From assembly GCF_902459465.1 (NCBI RefSeq), contig NC_047066.1, forward strand, positions 9,176,001 through 9,240,000: DNA of 64,000 nt, in the 5' to 3' direction. This DNA comes from Asterias rubens. Taxonomy: Eukaryota. The position numbers were made by a program, and so were the translations under genes. The stretch's first letter is position 1. Every line of letters starts with the position of its first letter. The notes below the pieces were generated by a model. The model was not told where the DNA came from. It did no database searches and worked only from the letters and a program-made list of their open reading frames with translations. Shown here one piece after another: positions 21,188-64,000 of the stretch.

Positions 21188-24100
21188 TTAATTTATTGCC
21201 AACTCCATGTCATAATCACCTTGTACTGACTGAGTGAGAGGAGTGCTCTGTAACTGTTGATGATGACTCGGGACTTGACCGTAATCAGATATCACTGACC
21301 CTGGTAACGGAGTACATGTACCATCGTTAGTCTGGATGGTCACTGGTATAGGACCACTGATTGTCTCCGGAATGGCACCTGGAGTGGAGGGATTGGGAAC
21401 TTGGAACACTGGGATGTTCATGGTGGACAGGTGTTGAGCTATGGAAGCAAGAGTCGGGAGATCGGACTCAAATCCCCCTTCTGCCACTATATTCTGGACA
21501 GTCTGATATTGAGTGTCATCTGCTTGTACCACATCTGTTACCAGTGGGAGCTGAGCTGTGGTTGCACTCTGCAAGTCCATCTTGATGTCTTCCGTTGGTG
21601 GCGCTTTCGGAGTTGCTCTTTTCCGGGGAGTTTTTCCATTCTTGTGTGTTTGCATGTGGCGATCGAGGTTGCCAGAGATCAGGAAGGTTTTGCCGCACTG
21701 CTCGCACTGGTAGTCCCGCTGATCCTGGTGCCACTTCACGTGAACCCTCAGGTTGGTCCTGGTGCGGAAGGCTTTGTCGCAGAGGTTACACTTGTGCGGT
21801 CGCTCATCCCGGTGCATCATGAGGTGTAGAGTCAAGCGGTGACTGCGGTTGAACGTCTTGTGGCAGATTTCACACTTGAAATCCCTCTTGTCAGTGTGGA
21901 GGCACAACATGTGCTCCTTCAAGTTGCCTTTAGTCTTGACTCGCTGTCCGCAGATGTCGCATTGGAAGGGGCGACTGTTATTGTGCGTTGGCTTATGTGC
22001 GGTCAGGGTACTCTTCGTGGCAAAGCCTTGCCCACAGATGGAGCATACGTATTTATTTTTTTCTTCATGTTTAGACAGCATGTGATAAGTCAAGCCGCCC
22101 TTTCGATAAAACACTCTATCACAGATGGTACACTTGTACTCGACATCTTTTGTGTGTAAGTTGCGATGACGGTTCAGGAGAGAACTGTGAAAGAAACCCC
22201 TGCCGCAGAACTCACACTTGTAAGGCTTCTCGGCACTATGGCACTTGATGTGCGACGTAAGACTATACTTATCAAAGAATATTTTGCCACAAAACTCACA
22301 GGTGAACTTGATCCCCATTTCTTCGTTCTTGTGGCAGTTTAGATGGCGCATGAACGTGTTTCTGAAATAAAATTCTTTCTTGCAGGTGCTACAACTGAAA
22401 GCCGGCTTCTTATTGTGTCTTGAGTTCATGTGTTGTTTCGCATAATATAAGTTCAGAAAAGTTTTATCGCACTTCGTGCATTTGTAGTTACCATCGGGGT
22501 CAGGCTTCCAACAGGGTCTCCCCCTTTTCTTGGGGATCTTTTGTTCCATTTGTTTTGGGTTTGGATTCTTTCGCGACCTCCCTTGTTTCCTGGGAGACTC
22601 CCCAATGGTCTCTTCAGCTGGTTCCTCCTCTTTATCGTCTGTCCTAGATGATGTATTCCCACCATCATCGATAATCTTTCTCGGTCTACCCCTTTTCTTT
22701 TTCGGCTGCTCTGCAGTCTTTTGTGTACCTTCCAAACTTTCCATGTCGAATTCTGCCTCTTCATCGTCTTCACTGTCATCTTTGTCCTCCTCATCCGCCT
22801 TCTCTTTGTCATCATTATCACTTCCCGTCTCATCTTGGTCGACTGATTTGGCTTCCTTCCCATTTAGCTCTTCCTTGTCATTCTTCATGTTTTTACCTTG
22901 ACTTGACCCATCCTCTGTTGCCTCAGCATGACCCTTTTCACCAACCTCCCCTTCATCCTCCTCATCCTCCTCCACATAAATGCTTTTTTCTTTCATGGCC
23001 AATCTTCTTGATGTGCGTTCTGGCGTTTTAGATGTCACTCCTCTATCAAGCGCACTTCTTAGAGATCTACGAGATTTGACATCTTGAGCTTTACTTTTTC
23101 CCGTTGAGTGTACCTTGCTTCTTGTCGAAACACTTGTTGCTTCGACAGTATCCCCTAATGGGTACAGTTTATCAGTCTTCTTCCTAGCTTGTTTTTTTGT
23201 AAGGCCATGTTTTGCAGCAAAGTGGCGTGACAGCACGTAGCGCTTACAGCACGTCGCTGAACAAAGGTCACATGTAAAACCAGCATCACTCTTTCGAGGG
23301 TACGACTTTTCTAATTTGCTTCTGACAACCTTAATTAGGAGCCCATGAAATTCAAGCAAGTGCTTTGATAGTCTTCCCCGCACGCTGAACCTACTCGTGC
23401 AGAGATCACAGGCAAATTTGGCACTTTCAAGCTCCAGGCGCCGTTTGTTGGCAATCTTTTCTGATTTCTCAACAGTCATGTCATGCAATGACACCATATG
23501 GTTAACAAGCTTCTGACTTTCATCAAAATTAGAGTTACATTTAATGCAGTGATACTGTCCACTGGGAGCCACCTCCTTGGTAACAGTGTATTCTTGCTGC
23601 GCTAATTTAACAGCTTCACAGACGCTACTTACTGCTTTCTGTCGAGAGAAATCATGCTCTTCTATCAGATGAGTGCGGAGCTGGATTCGGTTTTGGAAAT
23701 ACTCCTCACAAATTTCACATTTCATCACCTTTGGGGATGCCTCCATGCCAACTGCTTTAGACGAGCCGGATTTTTCAGGCGTCGGAACTGGTTTACTCGG
23801 CAGTTCTGGTTCAGAAGTCTCAAGTTCGTCAAGGATCCTCATTGCCTCAGTTATATCCGTACCGTGTACAGACAAGAGATGGTCATACAGCTTCGCCTGA
23901 GGCTTGAAATTTTCCCCACAAGTCGGGCATCTTCTCACACGGGAGCGACCGCGCGTTTTCTTTGTGACTTCGCAGTGGCGCAGCTTATGGAAGTCGAGCA
24001 TCACGGTAGAGCCAAGATCTTTATGACACTTGTCGCAGGAGGTCTCTGGGGTTGGCTCGTCGCTATTGTTGACAGTGTTCTCCTTCTCGCTGCCATCATC

Positions 24101-27100
24101 CTGCTCGACCTCAAAGCCATCTGCCATGTCATCGTCACTCTCTTCTTGCTGGACTGGGATACTGGCAGCCGGGAAGACTGGTGGTGTTGAGGTTTCCTCT
24201 GGTTGGATGATGTCTTGCACAGTTTCAGCATTGGTCTGTTTGTTCTGTTGCGCCTCTGTTGGTGAAAAAACAGAAAGTCAAATGACAATTAAACAAAGCA
24301 ATTTCTTCAAAATGTATGAGTTTTGGAGGTAACCTTTTCAAGGTGGGATTAAATGAGTGTCTTATTTACACTGTGTCTCACAAAACACAGATCCGGTAAT
24401 GTTTCCCCTATGTGGTTGTCTTTTTTTTTACCAAAGGGGATGGACCCTCTGATATTTTTATTTAAATTTAATCTTTCAGAAAGAAATGCCTTTAACTGTA
24501 TTTCTGCAGGGCTTGGAAAAATATGCCTATCATGATCATACCTCGTGCAGGGGATAAAAATTAACAGTGTAAGTACATGTGTAAACTCCAGGGTACAAAA
24601 CATTCACTGGTCCACTGACTTTCGCACTTGGCCACTAACCCCACAACCAAACAAGTCCTACAGTCTAGTGCTTTCCATAACACAAATCAGAAGAAGATTT
24701 ACAAGTTCTTCAAATTTCAATATTTTCGAAAATTAAAGCAATTACAAAGAAAGATATGCACTTTGGTCACGTAAAACTTACTGAGCTACAACCAATTAAA
24801 GGGAAGGAGCAGGCTTGGTAATTGTCAAAGACCAGTCTTCTCACTTGATGTATCCCAACATACATGACATAAGCAAAAAATAACGAGCCTGTGAAAAATT
24901 GGGCTCAATTGGTCATCGAAGTTGCGAGAAAATGATGAAAGAAAAAACACCCTTGTTCATGTTGTTGAACGAATTTGTGTGCTTTCAGATAGGAATAACA
25001 GACTTCTGGCTAGAAGTCTTTTATTATTTGAGTGACAAATTACCTCTTTCTCAAAATTTATGTACTTCAGAGGGAGCCGTTTCTCACAATGTTTTATACT
25101 ATAAAGAGCTCTATATTACCAAGTAAGTTTTTATAATAATATTTGTTTCGAGTAATTACCAAATGTGTACCTTCCCTTTAAAGCAATTACAAGGAAAGAT
25201 TGCACTTTGGTCTTGAAAGTAAAACTTACTGAGCTACAACCTCTGTAAACAAGGGGGGTAGAGTATTCCACAACTTTGGAGCAGCAAAGAACATGTACAT
25301 TATGTGCAAACCTCAAGGTAAACAAGCAGTAACTTTTTAAAAATGAATGTGAAATTTAAAGGAACACGTTGCCTTGGATCGGTCGAGTTGGTCTTTGAAA
25401 AGCGTTTGTACAATGATCTACACAAATTTGCCTTGAAATTGCGTGATTTTCCTTTTACTTTGCGAACTAACACGGTCGGCCATTTATGGGAGTAAAAAAT
25501 TTGACTCCCACAAACGGCCGACCATGTTAGTCGATTTCGAGTGATTTTTGTGTGGATCATAATATTCTACTTTTAAAATATGTTTCTAATCCTATGCATT
25601 TTATAACAAACGTTTACAAACTCGACCGATCCAAGGCAACGTGTTCCTTTACTTGGCAACCAATGCAGTATTGTGCATTATATCATATTGTTCTGTGTAC
25701 AGTTGTGCCACATACATGTACTTCACAAACCAATGCAGTTGAACAATTTCAAATGGTTGGTCAACTTGTTGGAAAATGTGGGCTGATTAAAGCACCAAAA
25801 CAAAAAGTAACTTTTAAATAGTTTGTTTAATTTTGTTTAATTTTCTTACCGACGTCAGTTACAAAAGTGTATCTCTTCTCTTTAACACCATCTTCACTTG
25901 TTTCCACCTCCACAAATAAAACACCGAGTTGGGAGAGAAGTTGGACAGCTATCTCACTATCTGAAGAACAAAAATAAATAAAAAATCTTGACACTAAAAA
26001 CTATTTGCTCCTTGAGTGATTAGGGGCCATTCAGAGAAGTTAAAATTTTATAAACTTTCGATTTTATTTCAAAATTGTTTTGAAGTTGATAGAGTCCTCA
26101 TTATTTATCATTGCTATTCATGGTTTATTAAAATACTGCAATACAGCTGTTAAAAGCCGAAGTGTACAGTTTAAAAATAACAGTCAGTTAAAATATGACA
26201 GATATTAAACGCGAGTGGTGAAAGCATGACCAGTTTTCAACTATACCTAATGTTAAAAATGTGTAATATGCAGTTGTATTCACTGCCCTTCCAGTGCACA
26301 AATTTCCAACATCTAAAATATTTTTTAAGTTGTTCCCCAATAGTGTATTATCCATCACAAATACCATCACATAGCAATTTATTCAAGCTTCTCCCTATGA
26401 AACTGGGCCTTCTGGACCCAAATTGCCCAAGTTCTGTCAAAGCACGCTGAAGTGAAATGAAGTCTGTATGCTTTTTACTTGATGTTCATATTTTAGTTTT
26501 CAAAGCTCCACTGTGCAATCTAAAGAAATTCAACAAGTTAAAAGAAGATGATTTTGAAAACTTAATTCCAGAAAAAAAAGAGAAAAAAAAAACAAAAAAA
26601 CAAAAAACATACAAAACGTAATTCACTTGTATCAACCAGCAATGTACACGCATCGGCCCTGTTTTTGCCCTTATTGCTGTACACTAGCCTGTGCATAGGG
26701 AAGAATCCTTAATTTTTCCACAAACCCCTTACCATCTTCAGATGCAGTCTGAGCCTGGATTCTTGCAACCAATCGAGTAGTCTTGTTGATCAGAGTATCC
26801 AGAACTCTATCCAGCTGACTCTGCCTCCGTAAAGACTCCCAAAGCAGCTGACAATCTGGAGACAAAAATACAAAAGTGTAAGAGAGAGAAAAAGTACGAC
26901 AACACAGGTAGGCCCAAAGTTTTCTATGAACTTCTGTTAAGTTTGTACCACATCCTTGATACATAGACCTACAAAATGCCCCCTTTTCCTTCCCACAATG
27001 CATTTTGACAATTGAAATGAAATGTTGCAAAAAAGGTTGAAAGAAAAATGTCCAAATTGAACATTCATGGTTCATTGACATCGAGTAAGCCGCATACAGC

Positions 27101-40239: not shown

Positions 40240-43200
40240 TTAATACAACAAGGTAGCGTCACTCGATTCCATCCAGTTATTCTTAGACATTTCTTCGAGA
40301 ATGGTATTCCTTTGCAGACAGAGATTGGCGTGGGTCTCGATGATCCGCAGAGGGAACCTGACATTACACACTGGGCACGGCAAACAGTCTTCTTCATCGT
40401 CACTGTCGATGACTACGGTCCCTTTTGATGACTGATTGGCTGTAATGTAACCCCCTGGTGGTGATGGCGTCGACATGATTTGGACATTGGCAGGTGTCTT
40501 TCCAGGATTTGGCGGTGACGAGTTAGGAGATAGTTGCTTCTTGGATGGTTTACGCGATGGAACAGCCCCTTGATAGCTTGGCATGACAGCTGTAGGAATG
40601 TGAGTAGACATGGTTGGAGGATCTGCAAGTGGAAGCGACTCGCTTGCTTGCCTCCCACCTCGCCTGCCCCTGCCACGCCCTCTTCCTCGACCACCCCTTC
40701 CTCGGGATGTTTTCACCGAGGAAATAGGGCTTGGTGGTGAATCTGTAAAACTGTTTTGTGCCTTAGTAATGCTGCTTGCAGATTGGATTCCCTGGCAGTC
40801 CAGTATGTGGCCTGTAATTTGCCTCGCTGTGAACTTCACTGAAAGTGGATGGACGGGAAAGTGGAGGGAAACAAGAATTTATTAATAATCAGTCTTAACT
40901 TGTAAACAATTGTTTATTTTTTCGGACACAATACAAAAGTTGTAAACTTTTAAATTCCCAGCACATGACAACATCATTCATAAGTAAAAATGCAAATTTA
41001 TTATTATAAATAAAGTTTAATACCAGGGATAAATTAAAACACTTTGATCCAACTTACGGAAGCATTTGGGACAGTCTCTGAACTCCATGGGGGTGAGATC
41101 CAATAAGGTTGATGAGCTGCTGTGAGGGGATGGTGTGCTGTTGGTTTTTGTCTTTGGCTTCGTCTTTGGCTTAGTGTTTGGCTTTGGCTGTAAGTTTTGT
41201 CCCTTTTTCACTGCTTTTGGGACTTCAGGAGGAGACCTTGTACACAAGAAAAACAAAAAAACATTAACCAGGAGTAAAATCATAACGAAATTACAGCATG
41301 GTTCAATTTCATGGCAATAGGCAATGCAAGTCTCGCTCTGTCATTTCTAATAATTGTCCTGTCAGTGAAGTGTCCCTCTGAAAATCAAGAGAAAACTCAC
41401 CCGTTATTGACTAAATAATCTACTCTTGCCACCGCTAGCTCTTTGAAAACTTTCTTCTCTTGCTTGCTAAGTTTGCGTCCAAGAAGATTCTGTAAGCCTG
41501 GCCGAATGTCTGAAAGAAGGAAAACGATCTATGAGTTTGGTATAAACTAGATGCTAGAGGTCGTTTTAATGTACAGATTATTCATTCAAATACAAGGATA
41601 GTTATGGCTAACAGCACCAAATAAGCAAAAAAGTATATTTTACAAATAAAGGCAAAAGTATTTGTAAACTCTAAGGCCAGATACAAACTCTCAAACTAGA
41701 CACACAAATGGAATAACAATACACTACATGTATTTCAGTAATCAACATTAAACACAGTCAACAATCAACAAGATATACAACAAATCAAAAGTAAATATAT
41801 ACAAATTTTGTAATAAAAGACAAATTATACGAGAGGCCCGACTACTATTATTAATTATTTTCTGGTAATGAAACCAAGGATGTCTTGTAAGTGAACTTAA
41901 TCACCGAGGAAACCTGTAAACAAGGGTGCGTGCCATGTGAACCAGAAACACTGGGGCAAACCCAACAATCTTAAAGTGTTTTGGGTTCTTTTATATGCAC
42001 TACAAAGACTAGTACAACAAGCCTACAGCTTACTGTCCCATCTAACGGATAGAGCAATCTCGGTAAAGTGTCTTGCTCGCAAGTGCCACGACTGTGACTC
42101 GAACGCACACTCTGCCGACTCGAAACACCAGAGCTTGAGTTTGGTGCTCCTAACAGCACAGCCACGTTAACACCATGACAGGGCAGAAACAATTTAAAAA
42201 CAGTCAATACAAATAAGCAGAAAATGTAACCAAAAATTTAAAGCAGAATTGGGTATTTACAAGGGACACAAATAAAAACAATATCAAAACGGTTTTAATA
42301 GATGGACATTTGCATCAGGGTTATTATAAAACCATAATTTATGTCAAGATGACCATAAAATAAAAGTTACCCATATTTTCAGTCACAACAGATAAGAAAA
42401 GAGCGTAAATTAATTGCTCGAGACATTCCATTGATGACTCCCTACTTACCAGATAATTTAGAATCTAACAGGACACGCCCATGGGACCTGAGGAATTCTT
42501 CTGCAACTTCTTCAAACTGAAAAAAGGGTATAAAAAAGGAAACCCAGTTGATATATTGCAAAAATAAATAAGGACTATTTTACAAATTAGCAAATATTTT
42601 TTGTTTAAGTGGTTCTCTACCAATTTCAGCTTAGCAGATTACTGTTCTACTTACCTCTTTACATCTCATCTTGGTCGGGGATGTCGCGGTAGTTGAGTTA
42701 CTTGTTCTTTTAGTTGGAAGTTTTGGACCAGCCAACTTCTCCCGTTCTGTATGACCTTTCTTGACCTCTGCCCTTCCCTCTCCTAGGACTCTCTGCCTAA
42801 TATTGTTAGGCTGACCTTTAGACTCCGGCGATATTTTATGCCTTGAGTTCTTGTTACCATGAGCACGGTTACCAAGGTGATTCGAGGGAGGAGGGGAGTT
42901 TTTTCTTTGGTTTTCTGCATCACTATCTCGTCTTCGCTGATTCGCCGGGATCTTCCAGGAATTTTCTCTGCCCGTGCCGGGACTCTTGGCTGTATCGCTA
43001 CTCATTGTACCTCTCGAGGGATTTTCTGATCGTCTTGGAGTAACTTGACTGTTGGACGAGGCAAGCACCATCTGGGCTGACCGGCTGAGCGAGTTTGATT
43101 TGTCTGATCCACTGTCCGCAGTTGACGCCATCTTCAAGAGTCGGTTTTTCAGTTCTGCAGTCTCTCCATCACTGGATATTAAAAAAATCAACAACAAATT

Positions 43201-51789: not shown

Positions 51790-54174
51790 TCATAAGTACA
51801 ATTCAAAGTCGATTCTCTTGGACTGATAGAAGTTCCCTTCTGATCCAACTTTCCGAACCCACACACCATCGGCGAAGAAGTCCTGATCCTTCCAATCCTG
51901 CATTTGTTGGCTTTCATAAGGTCCAAATTTATCTGCTTCATCCTTGTTTTCCCATTTGTACTCCCAGTAGGTTTTTTCGGGGTCAAATACGGTGGCAGCG
52001 GTGGGATTTGACTTTGCTCCATTTGAGTCTTTGCTGGCTGCATCTGGAATGAAAAAGGATTTCAGTTTTAAATCACATGCCAAATAAGTGTAATTTCAAC
52101 TTAAAGGGGAAACTTGATTTTCTTAGTATTAATGTCATCTGAGGGGTAACTGTAATAGGCCTAGCTGGCCTACATCAGATGTCTGGGGCAGGCAGCTACA
52201 TTTTTGTACTCCCAATGTTGTTGATAGTTTTATGAACCAGAGTAAAACACTTTACAGTTACGTGTATAAAAACAAGGCTAATAGAGAGGCCGAACTACAT
52301 ACAAGATGTTGTGACACGCTTATAGCAGTAGTGCAATAAGTGTAAAATAGTGCTTTAAAGTTTTTTGTTGTCATTCTCTAGTGCCAGCTCAAATAACAAG
52401 CATGCTATTCATGTTGTATATTTACCCACTTTGTGCGGTTGTGGAGAGGGACACAAACATCAGTAATAATGCCCTTTGTCAGGGCGAATCAGATGCAGCT
52501 TAGAAACAGTTTGTAAAAATGTTCCCTATCAAATCTGTTTAAAGGCAGGTTTGCAACATTGTTTTCTTTAAGGCAGTGGACACTATTGGTAATTACTCAA
52601 AATAATTATTAGAATAAAACCTTAATTGGTAACATTGAGTTGGTAGTATAAAACATTGTGAGAAACGGCTCCCTCTGAAGTGCCATAGTTTTCGAGAAAG
52701 AAGTAATTTTCCAGGTATTTGATTTCAAGACCTCAGATTTAGAACTTGAGGTCTCAAAATCAACCATCTAAACGCACATAACTTCGTGTTACAAGGCTGT
52801 TTTTTCTTTCATTATTATCTCGCAAGTTCGATGACCGATTGAGCTCAAATTTTCACAGGTTAGTTATTTTATGCATATGTTGAGATACAACTATGAAGGC
52901 TAGTCTTTGACAATTACCAATAGTGTCCACTGCCTTTACCCTTTGATTTAAACTCACCATCTGCAGATGAGCTGGTGACTCCATCTTTTTTTGAGACATC
53001 CTCCTTCGATGGTCCATCTCCAAACATGTCAAACATATCCTCATCTTTCTTACTCGATCCTGCCTCTTTCAATAAATGAGTAATCTTCTCAAACGTGTAC
53101 TGATATGCCTCATAGTTGCCGCTGGCAACGAGTTCGTCAACAAACCCCGTCAGTTTCAACATGCTTTCCTTATCCACCTCACTCCCTTCTTCCTCCTCCA
53201 ACTTGGCCTTCTTGGGACCCCATTTTCTCGTCACAGCTACCCCTTTCTTTTTCCCACCGCCAAGCCTTCGGACTGCCTTCGTGATAGTTTCCCCAGGTTT
53301 CAGAAACCCGATGATGTCTGCAAAGATTTTTGTTTCGAGTCTACTCGGCTCGGGTTCCGGGCTTCCTGTATTGATCTCATCGTCACCAATACGTTCTTCG
53401 GTTCCTTTCTCCGAATATCTCATCCAGTCGATGTTATCCAGCCAGTTGTCTCGGACTTCCTTGTCTTTCTTCTCGTAGTAGTTTCCATGCTCATCGAATC
53501 GTCCCTCTTGCATCTCCTCCGCTAGATTGAAGGGAGTCACACGGATACCCCCTTCAGCTATAACGGTAGCATCCTCTGCTCCTGAAAGTGTAAAAAATAC
53601 GGATATTTGACACTTAGGTCAGTGAAATTCAACGTCTACTGTGATAACAATGACATACTTATTTGAATTTAAAAATCTTTCACGAGTTCATTAGTATATT
53701 TTCGAGAGAACAATTCCGCTCTTTCTGTTTTTATTTAGGTATATTGTTGCTGTGGGGTGCTTCTTGGCAGAAGTTTACAGCTATTATCGGCGCACAACAG
53801 TAACAAGTTTACTCATTTGACAAAACAGCAGTGCATTATATTTTCTTTGGTACAAGTATTGCCCTCGCCTTTTCTTGATCTTACAAAAAGAGGCGAAGTA
53901 GCAAAATTTCATTTTCATTTCATCTACAGCAACTAACAGGTTACTAAAAAGACCTACCCTCTACATCTTCCTCCTTCAGCTCGTACTTATCAACCTCCTC
54001 TTTCTTATCATCCTCCTCGTCGCTATCCAGGGTGTGGTTGGAGCTGAAGGTTCGATTCCAACTCTTCTCTGCTGTTGTACTTGAATCGCCTCCAGCCCCT
54101 CCGGCAGCTCCTCCTCCTCCTGCCACTGGTGGAAGTTTTTCTTCAAAACGAACCTTTCTACCTGACACTGACAT
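51790..54174 (-). CDS. CD2BP2: CD2 antigen cytoplasmic tail-binding protein 2 (U5 snRNP 52K, Lin1 family), GYF domain, ~364 aa
   Basis: Exons 53958-54174, 52958-53581, 51790-52043. Motifs HTLDSDEEDD, TPFNLAEEMQEGRFDEHGNY, DNWLDNIDW, KPGETITKAVRRLGG and the GYF-type YWEYKWEN...GPYESQQMQDWKDQDFF...RIDFELYL*. A splice acceptor at ~54191 upstream of the ATG implies a non-coding first exon near 55.0-55.4 kb. Confidence 0.95.
52568..52938 (+). mobile_element. MITE family A copy in the CD2BP2 intron between coding exons 2 and 3
   Basis: TTAAGGCAGTGGACACTATTGGTAATT...AATTACCAATAGTGTCCACTGCCTTTA; nearly identical to the copy at 1-366. Confidence 0.88.
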
Positions 54175-55049
54175 CGTGCTGTCTTGAAGAGCCTGCATTG
54201 GATGGAGAAAAAAACATAGGATACATTGTATACCATAGATTAGACAATCACAGATACAAAATAAATAAAATAACACCCTACATAAAGAAAGCTTACGTTG
54301 ACCTAATTTTGTAATGGCAAAATGGGCCACAGAATGCGTCTAAATAATCTACTTTTTGGTAATTATCTTTTTTTAAATTTGTATCATCACTGGGAATGGG
54401 ATTTAACAATATATAAATATTAACACTAAGTTAAAGGGGGATGACAGATATTATGAATTGGTCTGTCAGAGCAGTGGTTTATTGCTAAAAATTATCATGT
54501 AGGCCTAATGTAATGTAGTTGCGGTAACGTAACCCTCCTGTCGACGGTTCTGTTATCGCAACTACATGTATTGTAATGCTGACTTTATTAATTGCGATGA
54601 TTGCAAAACCGGACCCTCCGGTTTCCGACCAGTACTAAGTAGTGTTGGCGTTATCAGACATTTTCTAATTATAACTTTTTTTTATGGGGGGGGGGGGGAG
54701 AGGGATGAGGCAAGGACACAAACGTTACCGTGGATTAATATTATATATAATTTATTTTTTAATGTTTTGTTAGCTTTTTATGGGGCAAAAATCTGCTAAT
54801 TTCACAGTTCGAGTTTATTGACTGGATCTAGCTCTGCAGAGTATGTCTGCTCACACAACAACCACAACTCTGACTCCTGAGGCTGAGTTGACTTCATCAT
54901 GTATGATTTTTTTCTTCTATTGGCCAATCTCATGATGGAGGTAGAAATGATCTCATCATGCTTATCTGTCAACACCACAAACGCTGAACAGTCATCAACA
55001 GCCAAATTGACAATAATTAAAATAACAATCAATATAAAAATAAAATGTC

Positions 55050-55496: not shown

Positions 55497-58400
55497 ATGG
55501 ATGACGTCAGTGACACAGAAACGATAGTTGAGGAGTCTTTGGATAATTACGACTCGCCTTCCATTCTTACGGGGCTTTTCCAGTTGAGTATAAAAATAAA
55601 ATGAATTCAACATCTTTTCTGCCTGGTGTTTGTGGGGGTGGGCGTGGCGGTTATCTTAGTGAATAATATATATATAGTGATTGTCATTTACATTAATTGT
55701 CACTGGCAATGTCATTGCATTGTATTGTCAGTTTGTAAAGGGCCAAGTGTTATCAAAATAACAAAGTTTATCTCCTAAGCAAGATAAACCAAAACTTCTC
55801 AGTCGGTGTCAGTCTCAATTGAAGTGAACATTTTAGTTATAATTTTATTTAAACTTTAATTAATTTAATTTGTAGTATTGCTATTGATTGATGTTTTTTA
55901 TCTTTTTCTTTCTCGAGTATTGCATTATTTCTCAAGCCTGTCCTTTCGAAAGGTCTGATTGCTTTTTATTTTTGTAATTTTTAAAAAATTCAGCTTCAGA
56001 ATGGAAACACAAACAGCAGAAGAAAACAAAATGTACACCAGTGATGGTGAAGGTGCAACAGACTGTCCTATTGTCAATGTTGATGAGGTTGACGCATCTT
56101 CTGCTCAAATTTGTAAGTTAATCCACTCTCAAAAGAACAGCTCTATTACAATACTTTCGGTGCATTAAAAAACAAGTGGTCCTAACACTGCAACCACCAA
56201 CTTGGTGTTGTTACAGTTCTTCAACAATTTGTTCAAAAACTTTGGTTTTTAAAGAAAATTTAAGCAGTCTTTTAATTTAAACACATCCCAAGCCTATACT
56301 GAGATTTTTTTTTTTTCATCAATGTTCACTTTTGGCTTATGTTGAAAATGTAACTCTTGCTGTGTGATTGTCCTAATAATTCAGTCATTTTGTGGTGTTT
56401 TGATTGGCAGATAAAGCCACCAATCCAGAGAGTCACCCACTCTGTACCGACTCAGCAGATTGCCAAAGTGAGATGTCCGTGTCTATACTCACATCCAGGT
56501 ATGTCTTGGTCCCCCAATAGACCGATCCATTAAGCTCCGCCCCATTGCGTATTGAACAATCACAACCCATTGCACAACCAAAAGCCTGACACGTAAAGTC
56601 CCAACAAAATTTGACTTTTCAAACTTTTGATTGTATAAATACAAACTGCGTTTAGTACCAATGTGGCAATGTTTAGCCCCTTCATTGTTAAATAGGGATC
56701 CTGGGAGACTTCACTTTAACATTCCATACGAATCACCAGGAAGATGGTAGAATACCCCGCTTTTTGGATAAGCCTAGCCAACAAAATATAGAGTCATTCA
56801 GCTAGCCATTAGTTGTGTTGTAAGTCACAAGTTATGATTACTTTAAGTTCAGTTTCGTAAAATGATATTAAAACACCCAAGGGAATGTTGTCCCCTTTTA
56901 TTTCCCCCTTTTGTTTAGACGTTTTTAAAATTTGCCTGTTTTCATTCTTTTCTTTTTGTAACATCCCACAGGGTGCCAGAGAAGAGAATGCACTCCCCAG
57001 TCTTTGAACATGTTTTATCCTCAAAGTTTCCAAGATTTCATGATGTGGCTTCATCAATTGGTGCCGAGGAGGAAACTCTGTGTGATGGTAAAATCCTACC
57101 CCAAAAACTAATATCTTTGTGATAATCTCAGGCCTGAATTTATCTCAAACTACTTTAAGCATCCGGATCATCCGATTGCAGTCTTACATGTATTTCTTGG
57201 CTTAACTTGGTGGTGATTTCCTCAACTTGGTGTTTCCTTGGCAACATTTGTTTCATGTGTTCATTTATTTGCCATTTTCATTAAGCAAATTTTGAAAAAT
57301 TTATGGTGACTTTTCAAAACTTGATCAACTTTGTTTTGTGTGTAACCTCAAATACATTTATTGCTCGGGCCATTTGAAGGAGGTTTTGTGTTGAAGCAAA
57401 ATTGAATCAATCAAAGACAAAAGAATTATACATACATTCCATCATCAATATATTCTATTTTTTCTTTTTTTTTCTTTTTCAGATCTGCAAAGTTCTATGG
57501 GAGCATTGCATCATGAGCCTTCTTCTACATCATCCAGCTTTACTACATGCCCATCTCAACAAGACGTCTTACAAAATTGTGTTCAATCTCTTAGCCCTGA
57601 CTTCATGGACTTGAGTCATACAGCGCCCACACCCACTTCATCCAAGAGTGAAAGTATATTGCCAAAAGATAAGCTGGCAGACAGTTCTTCAAAATGTCAA
57701 GCAGTAACCAAGCCCATTTCTTCAAGGAGTTTAAGATTTGAGTTAGATGAAAATTCATCCAAAAACCCTCCAGAATGTCAAGCAATTTTCAAACACACTT
57801 CTTCTGCGATTAAAAGTCTTGAATTAGAAGATGACCCACCCGAATGTCAACCTTCAATCACGCCAACAGCTTCCAAGTGTATAAGTCTAGAGTCAGAAGA
57901 CAACCCACCCAATGCTTCACCCACCCATGCTTCCAAAAGTAGTCTTGAGTTAGAAGATAACTCACCCGGACCTATAGACTATGGAACCTTAGTTACGCCC
58001 ACCCATGCTTCCAAGAGTATATGTCTTAAGCTGGAAGACAACCCACCCAACCTGTCAGACTTCCAAGCTGACCCTTCAGAATCTCAAGCAGTAACCACCA
58101 ATCAATCAAGGAGTACAAGACGTGTGCATAAAGATACCCAATCTGAACCGACTCAGCATCACATCCCAACAATGCAATTGCTTCCAAACACCAAGACACT
58201 AGATGGGACTATTCTTACAAGGAGGATGCCAAGTCCTCTGCAAGAAAGTTCCATACCAAAACCCTCAAGTCCTATGCCGAAAATTGCTCAACCAATATCC
58301 TCAAACCCTTTACCAAAAGGTTCCCATCCAAAACCCTCAAGTCCCGAGCCCAACAAAATTGCCAAACCAAAACCCTCTGATCCTGTACCAAAAGATTCAC

Positions 58401-61400
58401 AACCAAACCCCTCAAATCCTGTGCCAAAAAGCTCCCAACCCAAACCCTCAAGTCCTGTGCCAAAAAGTTCTCAACCAAAACCCTCAAGTCCTCTGCCAAA
58501 AAGTTTCCAACCAAAACCCTCAGAGGAGCAACACGTCCCTGGAACACAACTGCCTCCAAGGAGCAAGACACCAGTTGAGATTGCCGATACAAGGAGCAGT
58601 TCATCTTATGATGAGACACTCTCTGTCTGTGTATCCAAGGAAGAGGATGAGGCAGTGATTGAGATAAAGAAGATGCAGCTAGAGATAAGACAACAACTGA
58701 TGCACAGTGGCAGAGACAAGAACATCGGTAAGAATAAAGATTGTAGGCATCACTAATTTTATAAACTGTTTTTTGTTTGCTTTTGTTGTTGCATCCCAGC
58801 TTTTATTTTTCCGTTTAGGCCCTACTAACTCAAAAAGAGCATACATGTACATCAAACTTCGGTACTTGAATCATAAAGTGAACAATTCATGAACTTATCT
58901 GCCCCACTAAAGCTGCTGAGTATACAGATCAATAAACTACTAAACAGTAACAATAATAGTAGTATTTAGCTTCAGATTTTTTAAGCCCTTTTCCAAACCA
59001 TTTTGGAAAGAAAAAAAGTGTTGCGAGTTTTGTTGTTACAATCTCTCAAATCATTTCAAACAATATTTTTCAGTCTATACAAAACAAAAATTCCCCAGAA
59101 TTTGTAATAGGCTCTAAACAATCACACTTGATAAATACGATGAGAATATACTCCATTAATAATAACTAAATTTCATCTATTAACTTAAATTTCAATGTAA
59201 AGACACTTTTTTATTATGCTATCCAAACACAGATGTTGGAAACATCAAAAAGGGTCTTCAAGACATGCAGGGCAAACTGCGCCAACTTGGGACCAAACAA
59301 CAAGAGCAGCGGCGTCAACTAAGTGTCAAGATGAGACAGCAAGCAGCATCATGCAGCAGTAGCCAATCACAGCTCCAGCAGCAGGAGGTAAAAGCACAGC
59401 TGCAGAACATGGCACGACGACAACAGCAGCTTCTCAAACTGCTGCAGTCTCATAAGGAGCTTGCTGCCACTCTGCATACCCAGTGTGCAGAGAATCGTGC
59501 CCTTCAGCAGCAGTCGGCAGACCCTAGTCAGGAACAATGTAACTTACTGCAGGATACATCATCTGTCAACAGATCGACCCACGAAACCATCCGCCAGCAA
59601 GAAGCAACAGTGTCCAATTTAACACAAACGACAAAAATGAAAGACGCGGCAACATTAAGCTCAGTGGAAGCAGATACTCCTGTTGTTCTGTCCCAATGCA
59701 TAATTACATTAGAAAGTCAAAACACTAAGCTACCAACAAGCAAGGAAGCGAGGTCATTTAAACCACCCTTCAAAGCGAAGCAGGATTTAAGAATGTCATC
59801 AGCACAACAACACACTGCTAACATCATGACAGATAGTCCCTCAAGACCTGGTTCCCAACTAGAGTCACCTGGAGCAGAGAAAACATCCTCCTCGGCTGGT
59901 TCTGAAGCACAAAGTCATATCATCAGCCTCGGGTCAGGCAGCATCCCTCCTCAAAGCCCACCCTTTTCCCAATCATCCGTCATCAGTAATGGAAACTTCA
60001 TTCCTGACACAGCAGGTAATGAGGGAAAAAAACTGCTCAATCCAAGAAGTAATACAGCACAAGACAAGCCTACCCACAAGCCGACTTGCATTCAAATGAC
60101 CAATCCCAATCTGAATCAGTCAAGCAATAACACCAGGCGAGGTAATGAAATGAATTATGGCACCATCAATAAAGACATTTACCAAGATACAAACCGAGAT
60201 CCCAAGAGTTTACGGCCAACATGGCCAAATAGCAAAAGCATACCCAGATCTGTGGACAACAGCCTCATCTCCAACAGTACGGCTGGCGGTTCTTTGCAAG
60301 CAGTTTCCAAAAGCAATCCCAGATCTGTGGACAACAGCCTCATCTCCAACAGTACGGCTGGCGGTTCTTTGCAAGCAGTTTCCAAAAGCAATCCCAGATC
60401 TGTGGACAACAGCCTCATCTCCAACAGTACGGCTGGCGGTTCTTTGCAAGCAGTTTCCAAAAGCAATCCCAGATCTGTGGACAACAGCCTCATCTCCAAC
60501 AGTACGGCTGGCGGTTCTTTGCAAGCAGTTTCCAAAACACAAATTGGAACAACTCTATCTGGAAATCAATCCATGATAAGAGTCATATCATCTGCAGCAG
60601 GGCAAAGCCAAGTCGATCTACAAGCAGCCCAACCACCAGCTAAAATCATCATCATATCAGACGAACAACTATCTTTATTACAAAATATTAGAGCCCGAGA
60701 ATCAACTCATCATAAAAACAGTGTTCCAGTAGCTCCAGTCAGAGTGCAAAATACCGCTCCTAAGACTCCAATACCCACGCAGGAAGCTCAGAAGGTTGCT
60801 TCAAGAAACCCCCATGGAGCAGCAGAATTGCCAACTGCAATTAATCCAGTGGGTTTCAGCATGCTCCACACAGCACCTCATTCAGACATCGTGTCTGCAT
60901 CATCTATACAGACCAAGGTCTCAAAGGCAATGGAACTTACACAATCCACAGTGACACCAGACAAGTCTAGAGACAGCCCAGCAGTTGAAAGGAACCCACA
61001 AGGAGCAGCAAAGACTCTGTCCAGCACCCACATAGCATCCTCAAGACTAAGTACTCAGCTGAAGGGGCCTGGTGAGGATGGGCAAATCCCATCCATGATG
61101 GAGTTACTACGAGCTAAGCTAATCCATCCGGGCGTGAATGTGCTTACCATAAAGGGCAAGGTAACTGGCAGACAAAATATAAATAGCACTTTACATGTAC
61201 AAAATAAATGTCAAGTATTAGCAAGGAATTTGATCTAGTGCTCGTGTTCATATTGTATGAAAAACCACTCTAAAACACTTAACGAACATGAACAGATGTT
61301 TGGCCGGAAAGATTCGGAACAATTAAATTTGAATTCTGAACAGTACCAAAGATGACATGGTTTCCATAGCCTAATTGATTTTACAACCATTGGGAAGGTG

Positions 61401-62877
61401 CTTCACTAGTAGGGCACGCTCTAGGCTTAAAAGTAATTTCTGGGGCAGCGCCCGCAATCCATTGCACCGTCAAAACATTCCACTGGACCGTATCATTGTG
61501 CCAAACAACTGGAGCAATCCTACACAAACAAAATTTGTGCATAAGTATTTTGAACAATCCAATGGAACATACAACGGTCCATTGAAACGGTACATTAGAA
61601 CACGCTTGAAACTTTTCCGATCATCATTGTGTCAAAGTACTGGAGCAATCCTACACAAGTGAATACATGCATTAGTATTTTGAACATTCCAATGCAACTA
61701 TCCAGTAGTCCAGTGGATGAGCACATGCTGAAAAACATATCCAATCCCATCAGAACAGTCCTACCATTTTGACTTTTGACTCGCTCCTTTATTTTCATTC
61801 CTCCAGAAGCAAATTTTAGGCACAGCCTCGCTGAACGCAGAAGGAATGGTCAGTCCAACCACTACGATGACAAACTTCTATAATGGCTCTCTGCCTCTGA
61901 TGGTATCTCTCATGAAGCATAAATCCCTTAACTGGATCACCAGTAACCCCAACATATGGAAAAGTGTCTTCTACAAGGAGACGCCTCTGAGTAAACTGCA
62001 CAGTGACTACAAAGGTAAATCAATAGTTCAGCTCATGTAAAAAGATTTTCATCATTTGGGGATGGGAATTGAAATTCAAAATCCAAGCTGCTCAAAAAGA
62101 GATCGCCCAAATCAGGGGGATTATGTAGGATTAGTAATCCCAAGGAGTTCCCCAAACAGAGTAGTTGTTGTTGAATATAAATATATTTTCAAATTACAAA
62201 GTGAACAACCTGAGGTGATCCACATCAGGGTTGTAATGAAAGAATATTCAACTCAAATTCCATGATTCGATTTGAAAAACCCTTCGCTTTATTTGATGTA
62301 TGCAGATTTAATCAGAAGTGATCCATCACAAACGGTTTTAAAAAGAACGAAGATGTCTCCAAACGTGCCAAATACCCAAGCTGCAATCACAACAACAACA
62401 AGTTCTAACATTCTACAACCACAAGCTGTCACCAAAAGCTTTGCCGTCACCACAAGCTTTGCCAACATGTCAGCTCCATCCATCCCAAAACAGCTGAAGC
62501 CTGCGGAAAGCCCGGACCCTGTGTCCTCAAGTGGTAATCAACCAGCCTCCTCATCTGGTCTCAGACTGACATCATTGCATCTTGACCCAACCCCAAGATG
62601 TCAAAACCCAGCAATACATCCACCATTTGGTCGTGAGACAGTCTCGAGACCTCATGACAAAAACCCAAACAGTCTCGGTCCTATCTCAAGAGGTGACAAC
62701 TTGGTCACCTCAAGAAGTCATGATCTTGTGTCATCCTTGAAGAGGGTTCTCTTAATCTCTGATGATGAGCTGATGCCTTCATCTTGGGGAACGTCTCCAA
62801 ACTTCTGGATATCAGGAAACGGCAATGACGCAATCATCAATCCAGAATGGATCAGAGATATAGACGTTTGGTCGTAA
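55497..62877 (+). CDS. Large Ser/Pro/Gln-rich protein with coiled coil, RAMA domain and ANKRD31-like C-terminal motif (ankyrin-less ANKRD31-like protein)
   Basis: Probable exons 55497-~55582 (weak donor CA|GTTGAG; start could instead be ATG 56001), 55994/56000-56112, 56411-56498, 56972-57087, 57483-58727, 59233-61160, 61807-62014, 62306-62877, phase-consistent from exon 2 onward. MMELLRAKLIHPGVNVLTIKGK|KQILGTASLNAEG...WKSVFYKETPLSKL fits the RAMA pattern of MPND/ANKRD31. Family call is from remembered motifs, not a search. Confidence 0.75.
58250..58522 (+). repeat. Degenerate coding repeat, ~12-aa PKPSSPVPKSSQ units
   Basis: About seven units of P(K/N)PS(S/D/N)PxPKxxQ, ~36-nt period. Confidence 0.8.
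60234..60537 (+). repeat. Coding minisatellite, 4 x 75 bp (25 aa)
   Basis: CCCAGATCTGTGGACAAC at 60243, 60318, 60393, 60468; encodes SNPRSVDNSLISNSTAGGSLQAVSK. Confidence 0.95.
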
Positions 62878-64000
62878 AGTTGCAAAAGAGAGTCGCCAAA
62901 TCAAAAACCTTCTTAATTGCTACTCAAACTAGAAGAAATCTCCTTTTGGCAAGTTTTGTTGCTTTAGTTCAAAATTGTATATAAAAGAATTAGAATCAGG
63001 CAAAAATATACGTTCATAAATTAAAAAAATGGAAACCGATACTGTTGTTTCTCTTGACTGTTTAATTTTTTATCTTGTTAGAGATGTTTCATGACAGTAT
63101 AATACATACATTCTACTCAGAAAATACACTGATACCGTATAAACCAAGCTTTTGAACAGATGTTTGTTTGTTATTTTCTTCTTCATACGTTTCAGGCATG
63201 GAATTTCATGGAGACTAAATTATAGTAGGTCATGGCATTTTGAGATATGATGGACCCTGTAAAAGGACACTGTTTGGGTAGGCTACATTTGTTTGTAGAC
63301 ATTCAAACCAAACAGTGCACTCCAAACATGTCCACCGCCATTATCTAAAGAAGGTTGTTGCCATGGTCTTGGCCTTGGTGCCCATTAGGTTTTTAAGATT
63401 ATACAATCCGAAGTGCTCTTTACAAAACAAAAATGGCCTTGACCTCTCTCAAAAATAAATTTCCAGGCCTGATGTTTTCAAAATTTTACATTTATAGTGT
63501 TGTGATTTTGCGCTTTTTCTGAACAGTTTTTGAACAAAGTTTTGTATAAAAGTTTAAATGTGTTAAAATCTGTACAAAACTAGAAGTTTTAGCACAACAA
63601 TCGTCAGGCAGTGAGAGTGATTTCTTTACATGTAAATAACAACGAATCTGTAATTTGTAAAAACAATACTTGTGCTGATTAATACAAGACAACAGAACAG
63701 TTGAAGTAGAAAATCTGCAAATAAATAACCTTGAACTAATGCTTGTTTAATATTGTTTAATATTTACATAATGTCTTGTTCCTTAATTAAAACAATTTCA
63801 ACATTGAATGTTGCACACAAAGATTATTTCTTCGTAGCACTGTGTACTGTCTTGACTGTAGTAAAGTAATAAATAAGAAATGTGTAAAAATGTTATCGAA
63901 ACTAATTTTTTCATCATAATTCTTTATCATGGGACCATTTAAAATGGTATAAATTACATGGCATTTTGACTGGTAAATCCTTGCTGCTTAACACCAATTT

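Follow-up and report, generated by a model that had tools for sequence, protein, structure and literature searches.

A starfish gene without ankyrin repeats, with a product probably homologous to the C-terminal module of ANKRD31

Mouse ANKRD31 is an 1857-aa protein in which a coiled coil (residues 1340-1374) is followed by two conserved regions, CR4 (1701-1787) and CR5 (1811-1857), and the second of its ankyrin triplets is retained by every vertebrate ortholog (Papanikos et al.). CR5 is the REC114-binding peptide (PDB 6NXF), for which the crystal-structure paper names Glu-1831 and Ser-1828 as the S2 anchor, with Glu-1831 pairing with Arg-27 of REC114. The papers reporting the discovery of ANKRD31 found orthologs in vertebrates only, and later work describes the protein as vertebrate-specific. 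No relevant paper on an invertebrate ANKRD31 was found in a literature search. Sequence-independent binding of DNA or nucleosomes by RAMA domains is described in the literature on MPND and CcrM. The gene described here encodes a long protein with a coiled coil, a RAMA-like block and a conserved tail, and the comparison with these systems forms the basis for the interpretation given below. For this comparison we take CR4 of mouse ANKRD31 to be a RAMA domain, as per UniProt/InterPro.

The locus at 55497-62877 on the forward strand of the window (the whole 64-kb stretch of DNA that was analysed) is a real, expressed starfish gene with eight exons and a 1453-aa product. All introns have GT..AG borders and phases that are compatible across the eight-exon model, giving one continuous spliced frame. 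A 4388-nt RNA contig from a relative with ~94% identity (run X1) contains the junctions 4>5, 5>6, 6>7 and 7>8, and a loose end of the same contig gives junction 3>4, for a total of five splice junctions confirmed in a close relative. An RNA run from the same species (X4) covers junction 5>6 only (58727>59233). The junctions 1>2 and 2>3 fall outside the read coverage and are predicted from splice borders and phase, and the X1 transcript reaches 396 nt upstream of 56982, a length that fits exons 1-3 together with ~93 nt of 5' UTR. The spliced gene proposed in a first-pass annotation of this DNA is confirmed by RNA contigs, intron borders and starfish orthologs, and the three features that it had placed in order (coil, RAMA-like block and tail) do occur in that order in one spliced reading frame of the window.

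Exon 1 (55497..55582, forward strand, as are all exons) opens with the start codon at 55497, with an in-frame stop 21 nt to its 5' side, and begins the protein with an acidic, conserved motif, MDxxSxxETxVxESxxxxDSPSxLTGL, that aligns with the N-terminus of the orthologs P0001 and P0002. A CRE-like element, TGACGTCA, is located within this exon at 55502-55509. Exon 2 (55994..56112) is delimited by AG/GT borders of compatible phase, exon 3 (56411..56498) by the X1 loose end described above, in which it runs directly into exon 4, and exon 4 (56972..57087), to which the contig piece 56982-57089 corresponds, carries a block, SxSIxTxRxPxKR, that is kept in the ortholog alignment. The RNA-supported exon 5 (57483..58727) encodes a disordered segment enriched in S, P and T, and contains an array of eight 36-bp units (58230-58522) encoding repeats of the KPSSPVPKSSQP type. 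Exon 6 (59233..61160) is bounded by junction 58727>59233, seen in both X1 and X4, and by junction 61160>61807 in X1; it encodes the coiled coil, an RxFKPPFKA motif (59748-59777), a QPxK-IIII motif (60627-60686) as well as the opening helix and strand of the RAMA-like domain, and also includes 4.1 copies of a 75-bp repeat (60233-60537). Exon 7 (61807..62014) lies wholly within the RAMA-like domain, and exon 8 (62306..62877), joined through 62014>62306 in X1, encodes the final helix of RAMA, then a disordered linker and the conserved tail before ending in a stop codon at 62875-62877.

Orthologs are present in Patiria miniata (XP_038060778.1) and Acanthaster planci (XP_022085686.1), both of which carry the RefSeq name "uncharacterized". 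The N-terminus, the coiled coil, the RAMA-like block and the last ~50 aa are common to the three starfish proteins. Within the window the gene is accompanied by an XNDC1-like, a CD2BP2-like and a C2H2 zinc-finger gene, and the order XNDC1 / CD2BP2 / ANKRD31-like gene is also conserved in the neighbourhood of the orthologs. None of these three genes is known to neighbour vertebrate ANKRD31, and synteny is uninformative in this respect. A pseudogene or an open reading frame artefact was rejected on the basis of the spliced transcripts and the conserved orthologs.

The two ankyrin triplets of vertebrate ANKRD31 are both missing from the starfish protein. The Ank profile of Pfam gave no match at E ≤ 1 on the exon pieces or on P0001 and P0002, and no ankyrin-type motif was found in the protein, nor in a six-frame translation of the whole window. 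The earlier observation that the gene lacks ankyrin repeats consequently holds for the gene, the X1 transcript and the orthologs as well as for the full 64 kb. Given the transcript and the conserved N-terminus, there is no room for extra exons. As the ankyrin domains are absent, the protein has not been filed as a full member of the ANKRD31 family, and is instead treated as probably homologous to the ANKRD31 C-terminal module, with the designation ANKRD31-like reflecting how it would be expected to work.

The sole coil-like stretch in the protein, as determined from a crude heptad scan (35-aa segments free of P and G, highly charged and with hydrophobic residues in 50% or more of the a/d positions), is a predicted coiled coil at 59340..59483 on the forward strand (aa 588-635). 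It forms the end of a wider conserved helical block at aa ~530-635 (58661-59483), in which the sequence LQNMxRRQQxLLKLLQSHKEL is invariant in the three starfish. The coil text quoted in the first-pass annotation was recovered at aa 559-626 of the spliced protein. An exhaustive phmmer search with exon 6, coil included, returned starfish-type proteins only and zero vertebrate sequences.

Several lines of evidence support the presence of a RAMA domain, predicted at 61074..62310 on the forward strand (aa ~1166-1265) from the end of exon 6, the whole of exon 7 and the start of exon 8. The Pfam RAMA profile (PF18755) matched the orthologs P0001 and P0002 with E values of 1.9e-7 and 6.5e-8, with scores (31.4 and 32.9 bits) just under the curated Pfam cutoff of 35.2 bits, and the RAMA pieces of the window are 47-58% identical to P0001 across the block. 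Moreover, a profile including the window exons matched the MPND RAMA chain 7ydt_A in the PDB with E 1.8e-4, and the local alignments supporting RAMA gave z-scores of 3.7, 13.7 and 10.5, the value of 3.7 belonging to the spliced window protein, for which the alignment to MPND RAMA crosses the exon 6/7 junction. A precomputed PF18755 label agrees with this assignment, and RAMA was found in 65 of 100 protein-language-model neighbours. Pfam searches with the separate exon pieces of the window gave no RAMA or Ank match, the former owing to the division of the domain among three exons; an ESM Atlas search with exon 7 alone found nothing, and an AlphaFold2 model of the RAMA block from a five-row alignment was poor (pLDDT 48). 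The RAMA pattern of the first-pass annotation is supported by the ortholog and MPND matches.

Relative to PF18755 and the MPND RAMA structures (PDB 7YDT/7YDW), the starfish domain is recognisable by LLxxxLIxPGExVLxI ... DGxV ... WxSVxYKxxxL, with GS(L/I) and PSIW in place of SPSAW and GCGW. MPND, the only animal RAMA with a solved structure, is the best PDB match both by E value and by z-score (up to 13.7), as would be expected if the gene were a diverged MPND- or MYSM1-type paralog, i.e. a member of the RAMA chromatin deubiquitinase family, from which the MPN/JAMM domain had been lost. However, MPND ranks first only because the PDB holds no ANKRD31 RAMA. In none of the proteins (1110-1453 aa) did Pfam identify an MPN/JAB, SWIRM or Myb domain, nor did the exon pieces give an MPN/JAB match, and the starfish RAMA is located near the C-terminus after a coil, whereas that of MPND is N-terminal; such a paralog is consequently considered highly improbable. 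An MPND ortholog was rejected on the absence of the MPN domain.

The last ~50 aa (aa 1404-1453; 62725..62874, forward strand) constitute a conserved tail and a candidate REC114-binding peptide. Positions 62746-62778 encode its core, VLLISDDELMP, and positions 62842-62874 the helix that ends it, PEWIRDIDVWS; 20 tail positions are invariant among the three starfish within an otherwise diverged linker, including a Glu at aa 1418 and a penultimate Trp at aa 1452. The first-pass annotation had quoted LKRVLLISDDELMPSSWGTSPNFW as the end of the protein; this sequence is indeed present, at aa 1408-1431, but it is not terminal, as it is followed by 22 more residues ending ...NPEWIRDIDVWS-stop. The mouse sequence used for comparison, residues 1810-1848, was taken from a published donor oligo and reads EILQISKQELLP, in agreement with the mouse motif ILxISxxELLP cited in the first-pass annotation. 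When the three starfish proteins were compared at full length, the best local match to this mouse stretch was in every case the conserved tail core, in an ungapped pairing of 14 residues (mouse 1821-1834) between mouse IKEILQISKQELLP and starfish LKRVLLISDDELMP. Identities over these 14 positions amount to 7-8 in the window protein and Patiria and to 6 in Acanthaster, and mouse L1825, I1827, S1828, E1831, L1832 and P1834 all align to residues that are invariant in starfish.

The statistical strength of this likeness depends on the scope of the comparison. When only the last 60 aa were considered, the observed score was reached by 3, 2 and 110 of 20000 shuffles in the three proteins, and a hidden Markov model of the three starfish tails ranked the mouse peptide 2nd of 20001 sequences. 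When whole proteins were shuffled the score was reached 54 times in 2000 for the window protein (~0.03) and 469 times in 2000 for Acanthaster, and the match is accordingly modest. Searches of the PDB by phmmer and hmmsearch (exon 8, the three-tail profile, and the single tails of P0001 and P0002) did not detect the ANKRD31 peptide of 6NXF even at E ≤ 10, the best matches being unrelated chains at chance level (E 0.4-1.7). Similarly, homolog searches with RAMA plus tail of P0001, RAMA plus tail of P0002 (E ≤ 10) or the tail alone retrieved only the two starfish orthologs, and no statistically significant database match ties the starfish protein to ANKRD31 in these searches.

These results leave some space for a lineage-specific echinoderm nuclear protein, unrelated to ANKRD31 and REC114, with a RAMA domain that binds DNA or chromatin and a tail that serves another partner, the 14-residue likeness then being due to chance. 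No domain other than RAMA is backed by a database match, RAMA-only proteins exist among the known proteins of arthropods, and the absence of ankyrins, the missing ANKRD31 match in the HMMER searches and the whole-protein shuffle value would all be in line with such an origin. Still, in all three proteins the mouse peptide aligns best to one and the same conserved tail site, at the C-terminus after RAMA where it would be expected a priori, with a score that in two of them is reached by 2-3 of 20000 shuffles; the identities coincide with starfish-invariant residues, including the functionally mapped Ser and Glu; and the core pattern, which occurs only once in the six-frame window, has a chance of ~1e-7 per position. 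A chance resemblance in an unrelated echinoderm protein is therefore deemed rather unlikely.

In combination, these observations make an ANKRD31-like identity of the starfish protein likely, albeit unproven. The protein would then be a long, mostly disordered scaffold carrying the C-terminal module of ANKRD31, i.e. a short coiled coil followed by RAMA and a peptide of ~50 aa. By analogy with MPND RAMA, the starfish RAMA domain may bind duplex DNA or nucleosomes irrespective of sequence, and the coiled coil could mediate self-association or pairing with a partner. The tail is envisaged to wrap around the PH domain of REC114, where the hydrophobic strand VLLI would extend the beta-sheet and the invariant Glu of ISDDEL would pair with a conserved REC114 arginine, as Glu-1831 does with Arg-27 in mouse. 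The amphipathic helix at the end, EWIxxIDVW, would be packed against this sheet, with a Trp next to the C-terminus that corresponds in position to mouse Trp-1857. Through these contacts the protein could anchor or enrich pre-break complexes containing REC114 on chromatin during meiotic prophase.

An evolutionary extension of this model, judged from sequence comparison, is evenly balanced: coil, RAMA and tail may represent the ancestral deuterostome ANKRD31, with a Glu-centred peptide that was already a ligand of the REC114 PH domain before the origin of vertebrates, and with ankyrins that were either added in vertebrates or lost in echinoderms. If correct, ANKRD31 would not be specific to vertebrates, its connection to REC114 would date to the deuterostome ancestor, and the ancient parts (coil, RAMA and tail) could be told from the add-ons (ankyrins), defining a minimal functional core of the scaffold. 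It would also provide a smaller natural version of ANKRD31 for biochemistry. A hypothesis of function is in any case gained for the "uncharacterized" RefSeq genes of Patiria and Acanthaster.

A further comparison is provided by the C-terminal helix of TOPOVIBL (mouse residues 559-576, LEDLWLQEVSNLSEWL), an acidic, amphipathic segment with the pattern W-phi-x-x-phi-x-x-phi that binds the beta-sheet of the REC114 PH domain. The last starfish helix, PEWIRDIDVW, fits this pattern, albeit one that is generic for amphipathic helices. Several unrelated partners bind the REC114 PH surface through short, hydrophobic, Trp-containing peptides, and a peptide of this type could have evolved independently on a RAMA scaffold outside the ANKRD31 lineage, as in TOPOVIBL and ANKRD31. 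The starfish helix resembles that of TOPOVIBL as much as that of ANKRD31, and the spacing from core to helix is unlike that in mouse. Nevertheless, independent origin would need both the collinear coil-RAMA-tail order and the ungapped 14-residue match to have arisen by chance, and common descent is for this reason the simpler explanation; we regard convergence as improbable. TOPOVIBL also has neither the preceding strand and Glu segment nor the RAMA domain, in contrast to the starfish protein.

As to MPND, the starfish protein shares the RAMA domain but not the MPN/JAMM deubiquitinase domain. Measured against mouse ANKRD31, to which the starfish protein is probably homologous in its C-terminal module, several further differences concern spacing. 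The disordered segment between RAMA and tail comprises ~140 residues in starfish as compared to ~24 in mouse, the core is followed by P-x2-W rather than P1834-x7-W1842, the last helix is reached through a longer link, and the tail as a whole exceeds that of mouse by 3-8 residues, with one residue beyond the last Trp in the three starfish where mouse ends on Trp-1857. The S1 turn of mouse ANKRD31, PHYLQ, has no starfish counterpart. Conversely, both proteins are long, fast-evolving and mostly disordered, and both present a coil (predicted in the starfish protein), a globular domain near the C-terminus and a terminal tail of ~45-50 aa in the same order, with the starfish RAMA domain at the position equivalent to mouse CR4. 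The tail cores are collinear, including the residues corresponding to Ser-1828 and the anchor Glu-1831, and in both cases a Trp is found at or next to the C-terminus.

The gene was modelled by reading splice signals around three long plus-strand open frames (57497-58756, 59265-61238 and 62272-62877). The model comprises eight plus-strand exons (55497-55582, 55994-56112, 56411-56498, 56972-57087, 57483-58727, 59233-61160, 61807-62014 and 62306-62877); every intron is GT..AG with compatible phases, giving a single 1453-aa open frame that begins with the start codon at 55497 and whose stop codon ends at 62877. Public contigs were aligned to 56900-62890, and a 4388-nt RNA contig from run X1, taken from a ~94% identical relative, traced exons 4-8 exactly, with joints 58727>59233, 61160>61807 and 62014>62306. 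At its loose 5' end this contig runs from the last bases of exon 3 straight into exon 4, and the joint 58727>59233 is also present in X4, a run from the same species (~99-100% identity). Junctions 3>4 through 7>8 are covered by reads, and 1>2 and 2>3 rest on splice signals. A real gene is present, and it is transcribed and spliced; the start and stop codons proposed in the first-pass annotation are correct. Same-species runs also yielded low-depth contigs inside intron 5 (58825-59100) and from exon 7 into intron 7 (61900-62050), which represent either pre-mRNA that had not been spliced or DNA carried over into the libraries. Within intron 6 (61500-61700) the depth of the public run X3 rises to about 100, and X3 and X4 contigs end loose at 61635-61694, a pattern that points to an insertion polymorphism or a short dispersed repeat. 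A CRE-type site, the perfect palindrome TGACGTCA, lies at 55502-55509 within exon 1, directly past the start codon.

Exon 6 was the query in an exhaustive phmmer search of 1.84 billion representatives, which gave only three true relatives: P0001 (Patiria miniata XP_038060778.1, 1245 aa, "uncharacterized protein PB18E9.04c-like" in RefSeq), P0002 (Acanthaster planci XP_022085686.1, 1110 aa, "uncharacterized") and P0003, a partial ENA protein. The starfish orthologs carry no gene name in RefSeq. Full-length alignment revealed conserved islands amid diverged S/P/T-rich sequence: an acidic N-terminal motif (MDxxSxxETxVxES....DSPSxLTGL), a block near SxSIxTxRxPxKR, a helical/coil block in which LQNMxRRQQxLLKLLQSHKEL is invariant, RxFKPPFKA, SPPF/Y, a RAMA-like block and the final ~50 residues. 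As the acidic motif is conserved in the relatives, exon 1 is the true start. Short motifs common to the window, Patiria and Acanthaster are R-x-FKPPFKA (59748-59777), SSQP-x-K plus four beta-branched residues (60627-60686) and the acidic N-terminus (55497-55580), two of which also occur in P0003; other partners could dock there. In Patiria the adjoining gene, on the opposite strand, is of the GYF-domain (CD2BP2) type, and further out lies one of the XRCC1_N (XNDC1) type. The window has the same order, with a minus-strand first exon at 53944-54330, which we take to be CD2BP2-like, plus an XNDC1-like gene at around 40-43 kb (40240-43200). The window gene, P0001 and P0002 are orthologs. The Patiria locus additionally holds a CENP-S gene between the XNDC1-like and CD2BP2-like genes, and at 21191-24220 (minus strand) the window contains a single 1010-aa open frame rich in C2H2 zinc fingers (Pfam zf-C2H2, E 2.6e-38).

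No Ank Pfam match was obtained on any exon piece or on P0001 and P0002, and a six-frame scan of the 64-kb window for ankyrin-type motifs (GxTPLH, TPLHxA and similar) returned none except an isolated chance match at 3662. The X1 transcript leaves no room for extra 5' exons, as only 396 nt of the contig lie upstream of 56982, equal to exons 1-3 plus a leader of about 93 nt. Moreover, all three species share the conserved N-terminus, and a neighbouring gene in divergent orientation begins only ~1.2 kb upstream. The description of this gene as ankyrin-less is thus borne out by Pfam, motif scan, transcript length and N-terminal conservation. Since ankyrin domains were tested for and are absent, the protein is not filed as a full ANKRD31 family member.

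Animal RAMA proteins are few in number. Pfam gave no match on the separate exon pieces of the window gene, because the RAMA domain is split by two introns. The unsplit orthologs P0001 and P0002 match PF18755 (RAMA) with E 1.9e-7 (31.4 bits) and 6.5e-8 (32.9 bits), scores that are significant yet below the curated cutoff of 35.2 bits, and PF18755 is also their precomputed database label. The end of exon 6 and exon 7 show 47% and 58% identity to the P0001 block, and in a PDB-wide search a profile of the block alignment, window exons included, matched the MPND RAMA domain (7ydt_A residues 68-153, E 1.8e-4). In a local alignment, aa 1176-1257 of the spliced window protein, which span the exon 6/7 junction, matched the MPND fragment at z 3.7 (score reached by 5/1000 shuffles), compared with z 13.7 for P0001 and 10.5 for P0002; 65/100 protein-language-model neighbours of the P0002 block fell in RAMA clusters. 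On these sequence comparisons, the RAMA assignment already made in the first-pass annotation is sound, and the copy in the window species is the most diverged of the three. An MPND-type derivative would share the MPND match, and is very improbable, as no MPN/JAB match was obtained on the exon pieces or the orthologs. MPND and CcrM use their RAMA domains to bind duplex DNA irrespective of its sequence, and by analogy the starfish domain would bind DNA or chromatin.

A crude coil scan (35-aa windows, no Pro/Gly, >=50% hydrophobic a/d positions, >=45% charged or Gln) found one segment only in the window protein, aa 588-635, of comparable length to the 35-aa mouse coil (residues 1340-1374; Papanikos et al.). 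The conservation of this block is a stronger argument than the scan that it may be a functional helix. Exon 6 also contains a tandem repeat (60233-60537; 75 bp x 4.1 copies, 99% identity) encoding the 25-aa unit NPRSVDNSLISNSTAGGSLQAVSKS; the X1 contig skips about 280 bp here, and therefore copy number varies between close species. A second array in exon 5 (58230-58522; 36 bp x 8.1 copies, 74% match) encodes proline-rich KPSSPVPKSSQP-type units and is mostly absent from the orthologs.

The final ~50 residues are conserved in the three starfish far more than the ~140 disordered residues preceding them, with 20 invariant positions and the consensus LxSS[LM]x[KR][VI]LLISDxEL[MV]PxxWGxS ... IxxEWIxxxD[VI]W-x-COOH. 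The peptide first annotated as terminal lies in the first half of this tail; the protein itself ends 22 residues further on. For comparison, mouse ANKRD31 1810-1848, ESMQTIPHYLQIKEILQISKQELLPCHVMEQHWKFYVGR, was translated from the single-stranded donor DNA for mutating Glu-1831 printed in the supplement of Xu et al. 2023 (PMC10666023), with the frame chosen to give P-H-Y-L-Q, which the structure paper places at residues 1816-1820. This translation confirms the mouse motif ILxISxxELLP cited in the first-pass annotation. The best Smith-Waterman match of the 39-mer to the whole window protein, P0001 and P0002 was in each case the tail core, where mouse IKEILQISKQELLP aligns without gaps to LKRVLLISDDELMP, MKKILLISDDELVP and MEKVLLISDGELMP, respectively. 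The identities L1825, I1827, S1828, E1831, L1832 and P1834 coincide with starfish-invariant positions. In the structure paper the matched stretch covers the end-of-S1 beta-strand, S2 with Ser-1828 and Glu-1831, and Leu-1833, and Glu-1831 is a key residue forming a salt bridge to REC114 Arg-27.

In comparisons with the whole proteins, shuffles reached the mouse-peptide score 54, 55 and 469 times in 2000 for the window protein, P0001 and P0002. Limited to the last 60 aa, because CR5, the REC114-binding tail, lies there in vertebrates, as the hypothesis requires, the counts were 3, 2 and 110 in 20000; the three tests are not independent, since the tails are homologous. Against an HMM of the three starfish tails, the real mouse peptide ranked 2nd among 20,001 sequences. 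The six-residue core L.IS..EL.P (per-position chance about 1e-7) has a single occurrence in all six frames of the window and a single one in the 28-kb Patiria locus, each within this tail. However, database searches tying the protein to ANKRD31 gave no significant match, which counts against the ANKRD31-like reading: HMMER searches of all PDB chain sequences with the tail (up to E<=10) failed to recover the 6NXF ANKRD31 peptide, and word-indexed protein database searches with RAMA plus tail and with the tail returned only P0001 and P0002. There is therefore no link by database statistics. These null results would suit an unrelated RAMA protein resembling ANKRD31 by chance, which is nevertheless rather unlikely, as a collinear coil, RAMA domain and tail with a 14-residue match centred on mapped anchor residues where one is expected would not easily arise by chance.

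In combination, it is firmly shown that the gene is real and conserved across starfish, with a RAMA domain, a coil-like block and a strongly conserved C-terminal peptide, and without ankyrins. Homology of the tail to CR5 and REC114 binding are supported but not proven, and the ANKRD31-like reading, which takes the C-terminal module to share its ancestry with that of ANKRD31 and to bind REC114, is moderately probable. Both discovery papers found ANKRD31 orthologs in vertebrates only and later work terms it vertebrate-specific; Boekhout et al. left wider conservation explicitly open, and no report of a non-vertebrate homolog was found in the literature searched. The protein is filed as a new variant, in which the ANKRD31 C-terminal module comes without ankyrins.

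Compared with mouse ANKRD31, the starfish tails have a longer linker, no PHYLQ-like turn and P-x2-W in place of P-x7-W, and one residue follows the final Trp, which is penultimate in all three, whereas mouse Trp-1857 is last. Such differences could accommodate convergence on REC114 binding, which is quite unlikely, since both the collinear coil, RAMA domain and tail and the 14-residue ungapped match would then have arisen independently. The starfish end, EWI(R/D)(D/E)(I/M)D(V/I)W, shares its W-phi-x-x-phi-x-x-phi spacing with the REC114-binding helix of TOPOVIBL, LEDLWLQEVSNLSEWL, in which W562, V566 and L569 are essential.
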